This document shows positions 6,710-14,407 of a stretch of 64,000 bases of DNA, one piece after another. The notes beneath the pieces are model-generated. The model searched no databases. It was not told where the DNA came from and was given only the letters and a program-made list of their open reading frames with translations. Origin of the DNA: Paramoeba atlantica (Eukaryota; Protista; Discosea); contig CDRNVI010000029.1 in NCBI GenBank assembly GCA_977017575.1, forward strand, positions 434,001-498,000. Reading direction: 5' to 3'. Each line of letters begins with the position of its first letter. The stretch's first letter is position 1. The position numbers and the translations under genes are program-made.

Positions 6710-7552
6710 TGCTTCATCCAGACAATGACCGCGGGGACATGGACGCAGAGGGGTGGGATCAGTCAGTAGCGCATGATGATACTTTTGAATTGTAAAAGGG
6801 CTGTTAATTTGTTAGGTTATGATAAGTTTACGTAGGTTTGTTTCCGTGAGCTCTTAACGTTAGTCTTGTTTTTTCCCGTCGTGAACGTAAGTTCTTTCTT
6901 TCCACCTTTAGTTCATTTGTGTGAAACTTTGTATGAGTAGGAAGTTTGGGCTCGATTTTTACGTTAGAACATCTACAATTTAACTGAATGGAACCTTTAT
7001 AGCTACACAGAATATAGAACTGAATGTGAGCATGCATGATTTTTTGCTTGTTGTTAATTTTTTATTCCCAATTATAGTGTACATCAATAATGTATATCCT
7101 CCATGTACCCTTCACCCTTATGAAGAAGTGCCGCTTCACCCCTCATTGACGCCCTCCTTCCCGCCCTCTTCCTCTGCTCTCCTCGCCCTCCCTCCCTTTA
7201 CAATTTTGATTTTTTGCCGTATTATGAGTAAAAAAGGCGCCGCGAAGCGGCGCCAAATTTTTTTTCACACCCCCTTCATCGCCCCCCACCCCCTTTATTA
7301 TGGACAAAAGCCGAAAAAGTGTCCATATTAAAGGGGGGGTCACAGTACTATAGCTACTCAAGAAAAAGAGACGAGTAAATAAATTATCTCTGTTAAAAAA
7401 TGGAGTCGACGACTCAGACCAGAGTGTTAACAATATAGCCATCAAATTAAATAGTCAAGAACATTGATCTTCAGAATTGCATCAAAAGTGAATTCATTAA
7501 TCGAAAAAACAACGCGAAGAACAACGTACGCGATATTCAGGACGTAAAAAGC

Positions 7553-7668
7553 TGGACCAACTCCCTGGTGAGAGCTGGAACTGTTGAGCCAGGGGTTTCC
7601 CGGCCGAAAGGCCGCAGTCCTAACTCCCTGATGGGAGTCGGAACTGTTGAGCCAGAACTCCCCGGCCA
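7553..7668. repeat. Imperfect tandem duplication (~62-bp unit)
   Basis: AACTCCCTG(G/A)TG(A/G)GAG..GGAACTGTTGAGCCAG....CCCGGCC occurs twice in tandem. Confidence 0.65.
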
Positions 7669-7976
7669 AAATATATGGAGATGTAAAAACGAAATTTTGA
7701 CGAAGTTTAAAAATCAAAGATTACTCACGCTGCATTGAGAGGCTTGGCGTCCGACCGTCTCTCCCACAGGAAGTGCGCGTGACTTTCCGAGCCGGGGCTA
7801 GCCAAGCTCTACTTCCTCTAGTGAGATGCAGTCTCCTATAACCCTGCTGGGGCAAAGCCGTAAGACGGTCGGACACCCCCCTTTTTATTTATTTCGCTTC
7901 GCGCTGCATTGACACAGAATACTCCTCCTCGAACGCACTTGGCAAAGCCGTCACAAAGAAACCGCGCGGCGGTGAC

Positions 7977-8900
7977 GTGCCAGGCTTACGACGATTCCGC
8001 ATATCACACGTGACCCGTAAGACTCAACCCATTGAACAACTCCAACGTTGCCCGGAGGTCACATACGACGCGCCATATAGAATCCGTGATGCTCCCGTCA
8101 AGGTGTCAAAACTACCGCCCACTAAACCAAGTGTCCCTTGTGCCCATAAATGCCAGGACAAATCAGCATGCCTTCACGTATGTTGCAAAGTGAAACCCGA
8201 AAGGTCTGTTCATCCTAGAGTCCCTCTTCCCTCTTCGGAAGCCGTGGCTATAGACAGTTCACTAGCTCCCGGTAGAAGGCCCTGTAAGCATACGTGCCGC
8301 GACAAGACAAATTGTTTGCACCAGTGCTGCAAAATAGGAGTCCTCATCACGGGTGCTACAGATAATCCTCGACCAGAACGGCACCTCGGGGAGTCACCAC
8401 TAACACGGCCACATAGCCCACCGACAGTAGCCACATCGATAGAAACCGATCCGCAAGTCTCAACAGATGCCATACCGAGCGAAGAGGCCCAGTATGAGGA
8501 ACTGTCAACCGGTAATCCGCCGTCGTCCGCCGTAATATCAGCAAACACGGCCAACTATCGCCCGTGTCGGCACATATGCAGCAATAAAACTCAGTGCAAA
8601 CACCAATGTTGCAAGACAGGGGTCATGATCGTCGAAGAAAACAGTCAGAATCGAGTATGGTCACTTAGGAATTTGTTTACGAGGACATTTCCTGCCGATG
8701 CTAGCATAATATCACCACAGAATCACCCTAGCTGGCCATCCGAGACAGGAAACTTGAGCGGTACTCAGGCTGTAAACCACGAACTCTCTCATACACGCAC
8801 TCCCCCGGAACCTCATGTTAGTAGAGATAGCAATATAGAACGGATTATCAATTCGGAAGGTATCGTCAGATCTACAATTGAGCGTAGGAAATGTAAGTAA
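7977..8900 (+). CDS. N-terminal retroelement ORF segment with three CxHxCxxKxxCxHxCCK zinc motifs; runs into Tc1 sequence
   Basis: Motifs at 8139-8189, 8283-8333 and 8565-8615. A fourth copy at 10120-10170 begins the RT ORF. The start is GTG, so uncertain. Confidence 0.6.
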   Translation: MPGLRRFRISHVTRKTQPIEQLQRCPEVTYDAPYRIRDAPVKVSKLPPTKPSVPCAHKCQDKSACLHVCCKVKPERSVHPRVPLPSSEAVAIDSSLAPGRRPCKHTCRDKTNCLHQCCKIGVLITGATDNPRPERHLGESPLTRPHSPPTVATSIETDPQVSTDAIPSEEAQYEELSTGNPPSSAVISANTANYRPCRHICSNKTQCKHQCCKTGVMIVEENSQNRVWSLRNLFTRTFPADASIISPQNHPSWPSETGNLSGTQAVNHELSHTRTPPEPHVSRDSNIERIINSEGIVRSTIERRKCK

Positions 8901-10090
8901 CATTAAGAAAAAGTACCTACCCAACTTAGTTAACAAACCGAAAACAGGTCGCCCTCGCAAGCTTACAGAGACATGCTCCAATCGCGTCCGCCGCCTCATC
9001 ACCAGCGGTGCAACTAAGGATGCAGTCGCGACCAGTAAAAGGTTGAGAGATGAGGGGGTTGCAGATGTTTCGCCCCAAACCATTCGGGTTTCCCTTCGGA
9101 AGCGTGGTTTGAAGGGGAAGAAGAAATTACGGAAACCCCACCTTACGAAGCGTCACAAAGCTCTACGTCTTGCCTTTGCGAAGAAGTATGAGCATTGGAC
9201 GAACGCCGACTGGAGCCGTGTGCTTTTCACTGATGAAAGTAAGATCTGCCGTTTCGAGTCGAATGGCAGCCGGTGGGCGTGGGTGAGCTTTGGGGAAGCA
9301 CTTTCAGAGCGAAATACACACAGCACCGTGAAGTACGGTGGGGGATCCATCATGGTATGGGGGTGTATGATGGCTCACGGCGTGGGCTCCATTGCTCTGG
9401 TTCATGGCAACATGAATGCTGAACAGTACGTTCAAATACTTCAACAGAATTTGTCTCCTTCCCTCCACAAGTTGGAAGTCATGAAGGACCGGATCATCTT
9501 CCAACAAGATAATGATCCAAAGCACACGAGTAAGAAGGCCCGGGAATTCCTTCGTTTACAAGAATTGTGTGTCCTAGACTGGCCCCCGCAGTCTCCCGAT
9601 TTAAATCCCATAGAGCACCTATGGGGCGAGCTCAAAAAGTCGACTGCGGATCATCCAGATCCTCCCGTAGGAATGTTGGAACTTTGGGAACGCGCCCAAA
9701 AAGCATGGGCAGACCTTCCTCCGAGTGCATGTCTTCCTCTTGTCCGTAGCATACCCCCTCGTTTGAGGGCAGTAATTAGGGCGAAGGGGGGACTTACGAA
9801 GTATTAAGTTTTGGTCATTTTGGTTTGGTAAGGGTGAAGTAAGGCAAAGTTTTGGTCAAAAAAAAATAATCTCAAAAAAGTGAAAAAAGTGTTCAAGTGT
9901 TGGGATCGCATTATATCTTTCATAGTTTTTTATTGTAAGATCGTTGATGAAGTCTAAGTACGTGGGAATGTAAGCACTACTCCAGCCTACACTACTGTAA
10001 TATACTACTGCATTATCCTCTGCATCTCTTTTGTAAAATATAAAAACATTAAAATTTGTGAAAACATTTGAACACTTTTGTTAGTTACTG
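8839..10090 (+). mobile_element. Tc1-family transposon lacking its left end
   Basis: The right TIR ...TTTGAACACTTTTGTTAGTTACTG|TA ends at 10090 (reverse complement CAGTAACTAACAAAAGTGTTCAAA). An internal inverted copy AAAAGTGTTCAA lies near 9885. No left TIR was found. Confidence 0.8.
8878..9807 (+). CDS. Tc1/mariner DD34E transposase, 5'-truncated with no ATG
   Basis: GRPRKL, FTDESK, IMVWG, FQQDNDPKH and WPPQSPDLNPIEHLW, with 34 residues between D and E. The frame extends upstream to NGLSIRKV (8839), after a TAG. Confidence 0.92.
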   Translation: MSVGNVSNIKKKYLPNLVNKPKTGRPRKLTETCSNRVRRLITSGATKDAVATSKRLRDEGVADVSPQTIRVSLRKRGLKGKKKLRKPHLTKRHKALRLAFAKKYEHWTNADWSRVLFTDESKICRFESNGSRWAWVSFGEALSERNTHSTVKYGGGSIMVWGCMMAHGVGSIALVHGNMNAEQYVQILQQNLSPSLHKLEVMKDRIIFQQDNDPKHTSKKAREFLRLQELCVLDWPPQSPDLNPIEHLWGELKKSTADHPDPPVGMLELWERAQKAWADLPPSACLPLVRSIPPRLRAVIRAKGGLTKY

Positions 10091-12382
10091 TACCCCCTGA
10101 ATCAGTCTCTCGCCGTAATTGCGCACATAAATGTAAAGACAAAACCAAATGTAAGCATTCATGTTGTCAAAAAGGAGTTCTCCTCAAAGCTGGCGAAATC
10201 GCATACTCTGCCATAAGCTGGACAGCGAAAAATATTCTATTCCTTGCGCTTGGTGATGCCGAACGCGCTGCAGCTTCTTCACAAGCTTCGGAACCGCCCG
10301 CCCCAGTCGTGGCACCCCGCCTACCAGTTCGCACCAACTCCCTGCCCCGCACGAGTCCACTGTCCAGCCCTCTACGACATTTCCCACCAGCCCACGAGAC
10401 GCAACCGGATTCCTCACCTTCTGTACCACGTATAGAATCCGTAGCAGAACCCGCGCTTTTGCCTTTACCTTTACCTTTACCTTCCCCACCAGAAGTAAAT
10501 CGCAGACGCACGATACTGCAGAGAATCCCTCGAGCCCAGCACGCCCCAGCCCCAACCATTCAGCCTATTCGTGACCTGCAGAATCTTCTCGAAACATTTG
10601 ACACAATAACGGGAGGACGAGTTCTGGTACGTTTTACAGAGGAACAGTGGGGCAATATTATTACGAAAATTGAGGAACGTTGCAATTTCTACGTGCACCC
10701 AGCGCGAAACGATGAGGATGCCCTGTCTCAAGCTAAAACATTATCCGCGATCCTCGCCGTAACCGTCTTTGAAGCCGCACGGGAGAGCGACCCGACACAC
10801 GGCTTTCTCCTGCGAACCAGAGCTGGCAGAGCCAGAAGGAACTCACGGCCCTTGGCCATCGAACGTACCACGAAGAGGCTACGCACACATGTTCGTCAAC
10901 TCAAACGTGCACTTACCTTCATGAAGGGGGCCGCGAGAAACAAGCAGCGGGGAGAAATTAAGGAAGTAGGGAAAGCGTTGAAGTTGTACGTGGAGGAAGC
11001 CAATCTACAGAAGAGGGAAATCGATCGACGATGGGCATTAACTCGGTTCCAGAGAAAACCGTGGACAGCTGCGGGCGAATGCCTAGATCGCACTGACCCA
11101 ATCCAGGAACCCGAGACGTCTTACCCTACAGTACCTCTTCAAGAGGTTGAGAACTTCTTCGCGGCATCATTGTCAAAACCTGAAGAGAATCACAGCATAC
11201 CCCCCGTCGAGTTCTTGGGACCACGGCCTGACATCGACATGCCATGGTCGGATATTGACACCGAAATGATAGCATCTGCTGTATCTTCCAAGCGCTCGGG
11301 CGCTGCTCCTGGATCAGACACCGTATCCAACGCTCTGCTCAAGCGTTGTAGCCCTATCTTTGTCCACATCGCTCAAGTATTCAATGATATCCTTAAATTC
11401 GGGGTTTGCCCCCCCACCTGGAAATCTGCCGTAACTCGCCTCATACACAAAGGAGGTCCTACATCAACTATGGAGAATTGGCGACCGATAAGCTTAACTA
11501 GTTGCATAGGGAAACTTTTCAATCCTGAGCCACCGAATCCTTCAACATTCCTTGGATTCTCATGCGCTCGATACATCAGTACAAAAAGGATTTCTACCAC
11601 ACATGAATGGGACCGTCGAGCATACACAAGTCTTATGCGAACTCCTTGAACACCAACGACGTCACAAACGGCAATACTTACTGGCACAGTTCGATATCAA
11701 GAACGCTTTCGGATCTATCCCCCACGCAGTACTGTTACAATCCCTAAAATGGGCCCGTATCTCCCCAATTCTAATTAACTATATCAGCGCGCTGTACAAA
11801 GGAGCACCTATTCAAATCAAATGTGCTGAAGGCCTTACGAAGTCGATCGAGATCGGCCGTGGAGTATTACAAGGAGATACACTGTCGCCGATCTTATTCA
11901 ACTTGGCAATGGAATTGGTTCTTCGCTTCATCCGTTCAAGTTGCCCACAGTACGGAATCACTTGGGATGGAAAGGAAACCTTTCTGAAGGCCTTTGCTGA
12001 CGACCTCAGTATATTCACGAACACACCAAAGGAAATGCAAATTGCCACGAACGTATTGGTCAAAGTTCTAGGCGACATCGGAATGAAATTGAACCCAAAA
12101 CAATGTCCGATTCAACACATGGCAATGACTCAAGACTCAGGCTACATGACAAGACGACCGCAGATAATGATTGAGGCAACACCTATTCCTCAAATATGCG
12201 ATAATGGTCGCACATTCCTGGGTGTGACTCTCGGACCTGGTGCCCAGCATGGTAAAATTCTGTTCCTAAAGCTACGCAATCGACTCCGTACCTGGTTACG
12301 CAACATAGCTTCCAGCGCCCACGACCTACCCGCCCGACTCTGGATATACAACAATACTCTTTTGTTGTCAATTTATGTCTGA
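10078..12382 (+). pseudogene. Reverse transcriptase of the non-LTR element, frameshifted near 11524
   Basis: APGSD, NWRPISLTSCIGKLF, then a frameshift, then QKGFLP, FDIKNAFGSIPH, GVLQGDTLSPILFN, FADDL and GMKLNPKQC. Confidence 0.92.
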
Positions 12383-12434
12383 CTTTTAACCACGTTCTGC
12401 GCCTCCAGCGATGCGCTACAAATGAAATCAGAAA

Positions 12435-13498
12435 ATGGTTAAATGTAGCAAAATCCGCGACAAGCGAACTGTTATACTCCGAGCATGGTTGGAACCTCGT
12501 GAGCTTATCCAAACTGGCTTCTTTCAACCGCGAGCGCCGTGGAACAAATGGAGAAATCACGTGATCCCGATGTCCAGCACGCCCTGCGAGAACGCATCCG
12601 GAGAGAAGAAAACAAGAGAAAAGCGGGGTACTTTGGTCCGCCGACTGACTTACTCGGTTCAACTCACAATAACGTACGACGACTTCTCGACAGTGAATAT
12701 GAGAGGCATCTTTCGGAAGCCGTGCAAAGGCGCACTTCAGTTGCGGGAAGATGGTTCCGCGTAGCGACGGAAGCAGACCTCGCGAGGGACTTCGCTGCCG
12801 CCCTATGAAATCTCAAAAGCGAATCGCTATCACGATTTACGGCTACCGTACTCACAGAAACGCCACTCCCCACTAGAGTGTCTCTCCGCAAATGGGGCGT
12901 ATCGACACACACAAACGACAAGTGTCCCATCTGCGATACTGAAACGCAAACCGCGCGACATATTCTCTCCGGGTGTAGAAAAGCACTCGAGCAAGGACGA
13001 TATACTCTGCGACATAACATGGTGCTACAAGCCCTCGCAAACTCTGTGCAGAAATTCCAAGGGACCAGTCTATATCACTTTGACCTCCCTCACTTTCGTT
13101 CTACCCCTCCGTGGCTCACGGAACTTGACACCGAGCTGCGACCGGATGGGTGGGTGAAACTGTCCAACGGGGAGGAGTATATTATAGAATTGACGTGCCC
13201 CTGGGAGGAAAATTTTGTCTAGGCACACGAACGAAAAACTGCCAAGTACACAAATTTCTACCATTCCCGCAAGCTCACAAACCCGAGCACTTTCCTACTC
13301 GTTTTCGAAGTCGGAGCGAGAGGAAAAATAAGCAGTGCTGGTCGAACTCTGAACACTCTATTTATGGGTAATGATGAGCTGGTGGCTGATTGCCGGCGCA
13401 ATATGACCGTGAAGGCTCTGAGAGGGAGCTTCATAGTGTATCAAAACCGCAATGACAAAAATTGGATGGAGGAGAACGTTCTTGGCGACGCTGAATAG
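12435..13498 (+). pseudogene. C-terminal CCHC and restriction-like endonuclease of the non-LTR element
   Basis: CPICDTETQTARHILSGC, RHNMV, RPDG, IELTCPWEEN, AHERK..KY, FEVGARG and ALRGSFIVYQNRND. In-frame stops at 12806 (TGA) and 13220 (TAG); the final TAG is at 13496-13498. Confidence 0.88.
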
Positions 13499-13580
13499 AA
13501 ACGGGTGACCAAAACGCGTTTTGTGCGCGTTTTCACCATATAAATCTCTGCAGGATTACCTGTATGATACAATATACCTT

Positions 13581-13671
13581 TCCTACCATCACCTTTCCAT
13601 ATACATTGAATATTTTGGAGCCACATGTATGTGGCTCCGGGATTTGGACCGGTAAAAGCAGGGTTATAGGA
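13581..13671 (-). ncRNA. Candidate type-P1 twister ribozyme with a P5 insertion and two core mismatches
   Basis: The minus strand reads TCCTA-TAA-CCCT-GC-TTTTA-CCG-GTCCAAATCC-CGG-A-[41 nt]-AGGT-GA-TGG-TAGGA. P1, P4 and T1 (CCA/TGG) pair; P2 is 3/4 and T2 is 1/2. Confidence 0.6.
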
Positions 13672-14407
13672 GACCGCACCTCACTAGAGGATTTTTTTTC
13701 TAAATATTTTGGACTCAGAGGGGTGATAGGCAAGGAAACGCTCTAGTTTTTGGAGATCTGTTGAATGCCGAAGGAATTGGGTCAAAAGCTCTTACGGTGT
13801 GCTCTATGGTTTGGGAGGCAACCAGTACCTGGACTGTATATCCTTCCTTAGCCACCCAAAATGAGCCTTCCGAAGAAGAGGGTCCATTAGGATGTTCTCA
13901 TGGGGTTCTGAGCAATCAGGAGGGCACCGGGTTAACGCAAAGTAGCTGGGGAAGGTTTTCAACGTCATTTTGTGGCGATTCGCCTGTGAAATGCGAAGTT
14001 GTCTTGGAGAGTCACCATGTGACTGTTAAGGAGCATAAATCGGGCGTGGTCTCTGGCCAGGTAGAAGACTTTCGGTTTCCGGTCATAGGAGTTGAAGTGA
14101 TTCTTCATAGCAAAAGGGAAAGGTTCACAAGCGAATACTGAACAGCAATAAGTTCCTTATACGCGGTGATTGTTTTCCACGTAGAAGTGCCCTGCTGTAA
14201 GTGTGGCTTTTTTTCTGTGAATAACACCTAAAATTAAGGAGGACGAAAATTAAGGAAACTATTTCGTGTCACAAAGGAATCGCCCTTATTTAAAATCTTT
14301 CTTAATTTCAGTTTCTGCTTTCCATACACTCGTTGAATTAGCTTAGTAAGCGAGTTAAATACTCACCGTGTCTCTTTCAATAACTTATTTTTCGATTAAC
14401 ACTTAAA

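Follow-up and report, generated by a model that had tools for sequence, protein, structure and literature searches.

Does the minus strand next to an R2-like retrotransposon of Paramoeba atlantica carry a genuine twister ribozyme, and if so, to which mobile element does it belong and what might it do there? The question arises from a 64,000-nucleotide stretch of DNA (contig CDRNVI010000029.1, forward-strand positions 434,001 to 498,000), which we refer to as the window. An earlier note on these letters had proposed a twister fold at 13581-13671, had placed it at the 3′ end of an RLE retrotransposon, and had suggested that a competing hairpin could switch the fold on and off. Our analysis supports the fold and points to a different host element, in which the ribozyme would have stood at the 5′ end.

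A twister family with P5 and without P3

The motif spans 13581 to 13671 of the minus strand and has the layout of a type-P1 twister in which P5 is present and P3 is absent. Read from 13671 down to 13581, the strand is letter for letter as written in the earlier note, including the pairing of P1 and P4. P1 (UCCUA/UAGGA, 13671-13667 with 13585-13581) forms five of five pairs and is followed by L1 (UAA), with the predicted cut between U13666 and A13665 and the two adenines at 13665-13664. P2 (CCCU/AGGU, 13663-13660 with 13594-13591) forms three of its four pairs and has one C·U mismatch; L2 is GC (13659-13658), and a 5-nt linker leads to P4 (CCG/CGG, 13652-13650 with 13639-13637), in which all three pairs are formed. 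The loop L4, GUCCAAAUCC (13649-13640), contains the T1 strand CCA (13647-13645) and the T2 strand UC (13642-13641). The P5 region covers 42 nt (13636-13595), and P2′ is followed by GA (13590-13589) and T1′ UGG (13588-13586), all on the minus strand. The T1 pseudoknot is formed, CCA with UGG; T2 is incomplete, as L4 has UC rather than GC, which produces a C·U mismatch and leaves a single pair. The core bases are kept, namely the U-A of the cut site, both L4 adenines, and the G of GA after P2′ and before T1′, so that the claim of an intact cleavage site and following G holds for this copy.

No match at the Rfam gathering level was found in the whole 64-kb window. With relaxed thresholds over 460 nt, the Rfam twister-P1 model (RF03160) aligns end to end with the motif at 17.4 bits (E 0.62), below the gathering cut-off of 67.2 bits, and the alignment deletes P3 and inserts 37 nt at the place of P5. 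When applied to the 45.7-Mb assembly, RF03160 gave 56 full-length matches, the best at 39.1 bits (E 8.6e-6), and all of them lie below the cut-off. This model expects P3 and has no P5, and according to a review 78% of annotated twisters have P3 whereas 1% have P5; we attribute the low scores to a lineage that is without P3 and has the rare P5. A covariance model made from the genome's own copies (R1, built from 37 copies with the window copy and its sister on contig 16 left out) scores the window copy at 66.5 bits across model positions 1-74 (E 2e-17 for the window, 1.5e-14 for the genome), and this is the only R1 match in the 64-kb window. Genome-wide, the window copy ranks 35th among 146 R1 matches; the genome searches give minimum counts, and duplicate haplotype contigs account for some of the copies. 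With the canonical order of its helices and this score, the type-P1 assignment stands.

The twister sequences of the genome fall into three subfamilies, one of which has the T1 (CCA/UGG) and the P2 of the window copy. A search of the genome with the 5′ core pattern of this subfamily produced 41 matches, compared with none for the reversed control, and a metagenome scan for the subfamily core gave no match. We parsed 39 distinct cores and aligned 37 of them (alignment A2), with the window copy and the contig 16 sister excluded. Pairing in P1, P2, P4, T1 and T2 reaches 92.4% of the cells across the 37 copies and drops to 42-59% if the 3′ strands are shifted by 1-3 columns. Changes on both sides are seen in eleven of the 17 pairs, and the covariation score was reached by none of 500 shuffles. 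P1, P2, P4 and T1 all covary among these relatives, as the earlier note had proposed to examine; P4 occurs as CCG/CGG, CCA/UGG and CCU/AGG, and the third pair of T1 is always formed, as C-G in 19 and as A-U in 18 of the 37 copies, which bears out CCA/UGG as a compensatory change.

Conservation in the loops follows the published twister core. The domain order of the genome's copies equals the published natural layout, P1-L1(UAA)-P2-L2(GC)-P4-L4(GUCCCAAGC)-P2′-GAGGG-P1′. Within A2, the G of L2, both L4 adenines, the AA of the cut site and the A of GA are invariant, and conservation reaches at least 90% for the U of UAA, the C of L2, the G of GA, and the GU and the GC of L4. All copies are without P3 and have a hairpin at the place of P5, which is formed by unrelated sequences and has 5 bp or more in 26 of 29 distinct segments.

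These data leave very little room for the motif to be twister-like by coincidence, or to be some other repeat of similar appearance, since the weak Rfam alignment and the failure of any genome match to reach the gathering score, which would speak for such a reading, are accounted for by the missing P3 and the P5, whereas 66.5 bits against an independent genome model, covariation in P1, P2, P4 and T1 and the published core letters in L1, L2 and L4 all speak against it. Judged from its sequence, the motif is confirmed as a member of a genuine twister family, far beyond chance.

Two positions had been described as defects of the window copy, at the end of P2 and in T2. The first is not a defect of this copy, as most members of the subfamily have AGGU there. 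The second is genuine, given that the T2 pair in question is C-G in 33 of the 37 relatives. The same G-to-U change (AAGC to AAUC) is seen in three lineages, represented by C20:299548 (L069), C98/C101 (L087/L089) and the window copy (13642), whose P5 stems are unrelated and whose L2 shows no change that would restore the pair. Recurrent mutation, gene conversion or tolerance of the variant could each account for this; downstream of the twister at C20:299548 the recombinase frame is still open, so that the substitution may be a tolerated one. The other two subfamilies, A and B (L001-L030), have T1 CCC/GGG and P2 of CUCC/GGAG and ACAC/GUGU, respectively. An ORF of 233 aa with no Pfam match starts 66 nt after the subfamily-B twisters L004 and L010.

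Elements at the locus and their relatives

On the plus strand, an R2-like, probably RLE-type, non-LTR retrotransposon extends from 7909 to 13576, with boundaries taken from its other copies in the genome, and ends 4 nt from the twister. Pfam places its RVT_1 domain at 11552-12382, and the nearest solved reverse transcriptase is that of R2Bm (8gh6, E 2.7e-18), followed by LINE-1 ORF2 (1e-11). Pfam searches of the element found no AP-endonuclease domain, and the C-terminal ORF (12878-13222), in which we looked for an RLE domain by comparison with solved structures, had no significant match. The R2-like reverse transcriptase together with the absence of an AP-endonuclease match makes an R2/RLE-type identity plausible. 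Four genome copies start at the 5′ boundary, 7909. Ten other copies of the 3′ end, which represent about seven distinct loci as some lie on near-identical duplicate contigs, share the terminus, and eight of the ten start within 1-2 bases of window position 13576 (minus strand TATATTGTATCATACAGG). The pair on C54 and C99 has a short tandem repeat at the terminus. None of the ten has a twister beside it, and their flanks are unrelated to the flank in the window. That other copies terminate at this base beside unrelated flanks shows 7909-13576 to be an insertion.

The earlier note's assignment of the twister to the RLE retrotransposon's 3′ end is thus not supported in any functional sense. R2-type elements carry HDV-like self-cleaving ribozymes, and a twister just 4 nt from the terminus at 13576 might be taken for an antisense 3′-end ribozyme of the R2-like element that processes its RNA or its antisense transcript. 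We regard this as highly improbable, considering that the ten other 3′ ends lack a twister, that the twister lies on the strand opposite to the reverse transcriptase, that the far side of the insertion (7908 to 7700) continues the module of the twister element, and that all 40 other copies of the subfamily lie at the 5′ end of a different repeat.

The R2-like element itself contains, on the plus strand, a nested Tc1/mariner-like DNA transposon of about 1.26 kb (8838-10092; the end was read directly and the start inferred from the length difference), with an open transposase ORF of 309 aa that matches HTH_Tnp_Tc3_2 and DDE_3 in Pfam. Neither the copy of the R2-like element on contig 60 nor the sister locus on contig 16 has this insertion. 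Elsewhere in the genome the transposon recurs at least 25 times with 93-98% identity, often in closely spaced inverted pairs. For kinetoplastids, reports of DNA transposons are rare. Pfam searches of ten ORFs downstream of twisters gave no match except a Tc3-type HTH at locus L020, which prompted us to consider the twister as part of the terminal repeats of a Tc1-like DNA transposon. We rejected this candidate because homology between copies runs well past the supposed right repeat. The Tc1-like transposon was likewise rejected as the twister's host, being in the window a separate nested insertion that is absent from the contig 60 copy and the contig 16 locus.

The element to which the twister belongs can be followed on both sides of the R2-like insertion. 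Directly upstream of P1 on the minus strand is a 20-nt leader (13672-13691), whose outer end is the 5′ end of the element and lies directly against a MITE-like repeat. The leader and the 91-nt twister together form what we call the head (13691-13581), and the leader, the first strand of P1 and the U of L1 make up the 26 nt upstream of the predicted cut. The rest of the 5′ non-coding module is found at 7348-7908 of the minus strand and includes a G-run, TCCGAC, GGCTTTG, a spare of the head in inverted orientation (see below), GCGCACTTCCTGT and GGTCGGACGCC. In relatives, this module comes directly after the twister; its presence in the sequence from 7908 to 7700 shows that the R2-like insertion split the minus-strand twister element. 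Homology of the module to the relatives is recognisable to about 7620-7730, and the remnant ends at 7347 against another abundant repeat, beyond which the ORFs of the element are absent. A 34-nt direct repeat occurs twice within the remnant (7559-7592 and 7622-7655, 63 nt apart).

Both outer neighbours are common in the genome. The abundant repeat at window positions 6900-7347 has at least 15 copies with 93-94% identity over 450 nt. One terminal repeat of the MITE-like element, at 13694-13841, borders the twister element on its 5′ side; it recurs at about 40 further places with 78-85% identity, many of them as inverted pairs about 600 nt apart, and only one arm of it is present in the window. 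A sister of the whole locus lies at C16:403406-407943 (L032, L090), with 96-98% identity and the same combination of twister head and R2-like insertion; the 5′ portion of its R2-like element has suffered a deletion, and the Tc1-like insertion is absent. Its similarity identifies it as a second haplotype or a segmental duplicate.

Intact relatives provide a view of what the window copy has lost. Homology within the subfamily begins sharply 26-28 nt upstream of AACCC and runs for 1-1.5 kb downstream within each lineage, and from this sharp start we conclude that several related repeats carry the twister immediately within their 5′ end. Tyrosine recombinase domains (PF00589, Phage_integrase) were found 2.7-4.2 kb downstream and on the same strand of 12 twisters, located on contigs 53, 12, 84, 3 (twice), 6, 51, 56, 83, 20, 29 and 16, with fewer than one such pair expected by chance (92 × 146 sites in 45.7 Mb). 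The closest relatives of the window copy, C12:40262 and C84:60968 (P1 UCCUA/UAGGA), are among these 12. The window itself has no recombinase match, and its element ends at 7347. A genome search for RVT_1, in which 150 of 1851 candidates were scored and LINE-type matches dominated, placed such a domain about 5.7 kb downstream of two further twisters, on contigs 7 and 65. It is likely, in our assessment, that the window twister represents the first 115 bases of a broken minus-strand element that is distinct from the R2-like element and whose intact relatives encode a tyrosine recombinase.

The genomic background of these elements is of a particular kind. A kinetoplastid-type spliced-leader 3′ segment, CAGTTTCTGTACCTTGTTG, has 793 matches in the genome and 2 in the control, and 24 of the 25 window ORFs of at least 250 aa are on the plus strand, the lone minus-strand one overlapping a longer plus-strand ORF. 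Both the spliced-leader count and the one-strand arrangement of ORFs fit a kinetoplastid-type genome. The spliced-leader matches are dispersed over many contigs and both strands, rather than forming one tandem array.

An inverted copy of the head and the state of the window copy

Between the R2-like insertion and the broken end of the twister element, at 7814-7848 on the minus strand, lies an inverted copy of the leader, the 5′ strand of P1, UAA, the 5′ strand of P2, GC and a U, complementary to 13657-13691 at 33 of 35 positions. This spare covers all 26 nt upstream of the predicted cut and 9 nt beyond, and differs from the head by two substitutions. It is now 5.8 kb away from the head as a consequence of the R2-like insertion; in relatives, the spare is 58-326 nt downstream of the twister. 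Fifteen of 21 distinct copies of the subfamily have an inverted copy of their own head that matches at 24-26 of 26 positions, compared with 11-15 of 26 in the controls (reversed sequence and upstream sequence). No such spare was found within 450 nt downstream of the twisters of subfamilies A and B. Leaders differ between lineages, and each spare follows the head of its own lineage, a match that would be expected if one were copied from the other in each round.

The cycle that we consider likely for working copies builds on features read directly from the DNA, namely the fold, its covariation, the copy number, the fixed place at the 5′ end, the recombinase downstream in relatives and the spare matched to each lineage. 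The element would be read through from host polycistronic transcription, and its twister would cut at U^AA, 26-28 nt inside the element, and thereby free the element RNA from the upstream host RNA. The head removed in this way may later be restored from the inverted spare downstream. First-strand cDNA made on the cleaved RNA would have a 3′ end complementary to its own spare copy, and because of this complementarity fold-back priming could rebuild the head. We estimate a probability somewhat short of one half, roughly 45%, for the full reading, in which kinetoplastid VIPER/TATE-like retrotransposons use a P5-type twister to excise themselves from polycistronic transcripts and rebuild the lost 26-28 nt from the inverted leader spare, for example by fold-back priming, and in which the window copy is a fossil.

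As to the window copy itself, its hairpin had been interpreted as a possible switch. A 10-bp palindrome is present at 13638-13617, as described, at the place of the relatives' P5. Its competition with P4′ is limited to the two outermost pairs, which alone take the GG of P4, and the site is a P5 site in all relatives; an 8-bp form of the hairpin is compatible with P4 at the P5 place in a constrained fold. The minimum-energy fold of the window copy is not a twister, and the twister-compatible fold lies 17.6 kcal/mol above it, against 6.2-10 kcal/mol in most relatives, a penalty that is nearly the worst among 34 copies. An on/off switch is unnecessary for explaining the hairpin, which can be understood as the rearranged P5 of a copy with several signs of decay.

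The R2-like insertion has broken up the host element and parted the twister from its spare, and the remainder of the element is missing; the twister is antisense to the local direction of genes; and in the contig 16 sister, P4 has changed from CCGG to GCAA and the R1 score is 48.0 bits, which suggests that the fold is not under constraint. A copy that is still active, or switchable between the hairpin and the twister fold so as to regulate cleavage of an antisense transcript, would be consistent with its intact P1, P4 and T1, with a P2 of three out of four pairs as in most relatives, with the preserved U-A site, L4 adenines and G of GA, with the 8-bp hairpin that fits beside P4, and with the recurrence of the T2 change in a lineage that has an open recombinase frame. 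We nevertheless consider present activity unlikely. The T2 pair that 33 of 37 relatives retain as C-G is lost, and reviews report that pseudoknot mutations strongly reduce twister activity; the large energy gap to the minimum-energy fold, the broken host element, the sister without P4 and the antisense orientation weigh in the same direction. From its sequence, the window copy is probably a dead fossil, most likely with no present function.

Relation to known ribozymes and retroelements

The copies in this genome share with known type-P1 twisters (RF03160; rice Osa-1-4, Schistosoma Sma-1) the order P1-UAA-P2-GC-P4-L4-P2′-GA-T1′-P1′, the L4 pattern GUCCCAAGC, the pseudoknots from L4 to L1 and L2, and the predicted U-A cut. 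The P2 of Schistosoma twisters, CUCC/GGAG, is also that of subfamily A. The copies differ from known members in being without P3, in always having P5 and in scoring below the Rfam cut-off throughout; the subfamily of the window has T1 CCA/UGG in place of CCC/GGG, and the window copy adds the T2 G-to-U change and a rearranged P5.

The closest precedent in arrangement is Perere-3 of Schistosoma mansoni, a retroelement with a twister at its 5′ end and the only setting with a confirmed biological role for a twister (PMC8501958). There too the twister is co-transcribed with the retroelement, and cleavage has been proposed to free the element RNA. Perere-3, however, is an RTE-type non-LTR element, whereas the host described here carries a tyrosine recombinase; the 5′ strand of P1 in Perere-3 derives from the target-site duplication, while here the whole of P1 and a 20-nt leader belong to the element, and the elements of this genome keep an internal inverted spare of the piece that would be cut off. 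Among trypanosomatids, the known 5′ ribozyme is Pr77, an HDV-like ribozyme at the 5′ end of L1Tc/ingi, and it is likewise a self-cleaving RNA at a retroelement 5′ end in a polycistronic kinetoplastid, with presumed excision from a longer transcript. Pr77 and the HDV-like ribozymes of R2 are of a different class from twister and cut at their own first base, so that nothing is lost, in contrast to the twister here, which is predicted to cut 26-28 nt inside the element.

Recombinase-encoding retroelements are known from kinetoplastids, including Bodo saltans, in the form of VIPER and TATE. As in DIRS, VIPER and TATE, a tyrosine recombinase lies downstream in the twister-headed elements, and the internal segment complementary to the head recalls the internal complementary region of DIRS1. 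VIPER and TATE have split direct repeats; neither long inverted terminal repeats nor split direct repeats were seen in the part of the elements that we compared, which stops short of their 3′ ends. The word 'ribozyme' is absent from the main VIPER/TATE study (PMC6681497), and our search of open-access papers and preprints returned no paper joining twister with kinetoplastids and none joining a self-cleaving ribozyme with recombinase retroelements. The expectation that a twister tied to a retroelement would come as a surprise in a kinetoplastid-type genome is in keeping with this literature.

Taken alone, the locus is a modest result, a dead copy. For annotation, its family indicates that the Rfam twister cut-off misses a lineage of at least 146 copies without P3 and with P5, and that adjacency to a retroelement can mislead when elements nest. 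A second independent pairing of twister and retroelement would show that different ribozyme classes have been recruited repeatedly to free 5′ ends, in this case in another class of retroelement and in a protist with all genes in long polycistrons. The matched head and spare offer a directly testable idea of how an element affords cutting inside itself and, if the proposed cycle is true, would amount to a ribozyme-plus-template system of 5′-end maintenance that has not been described for any class of retroelement.
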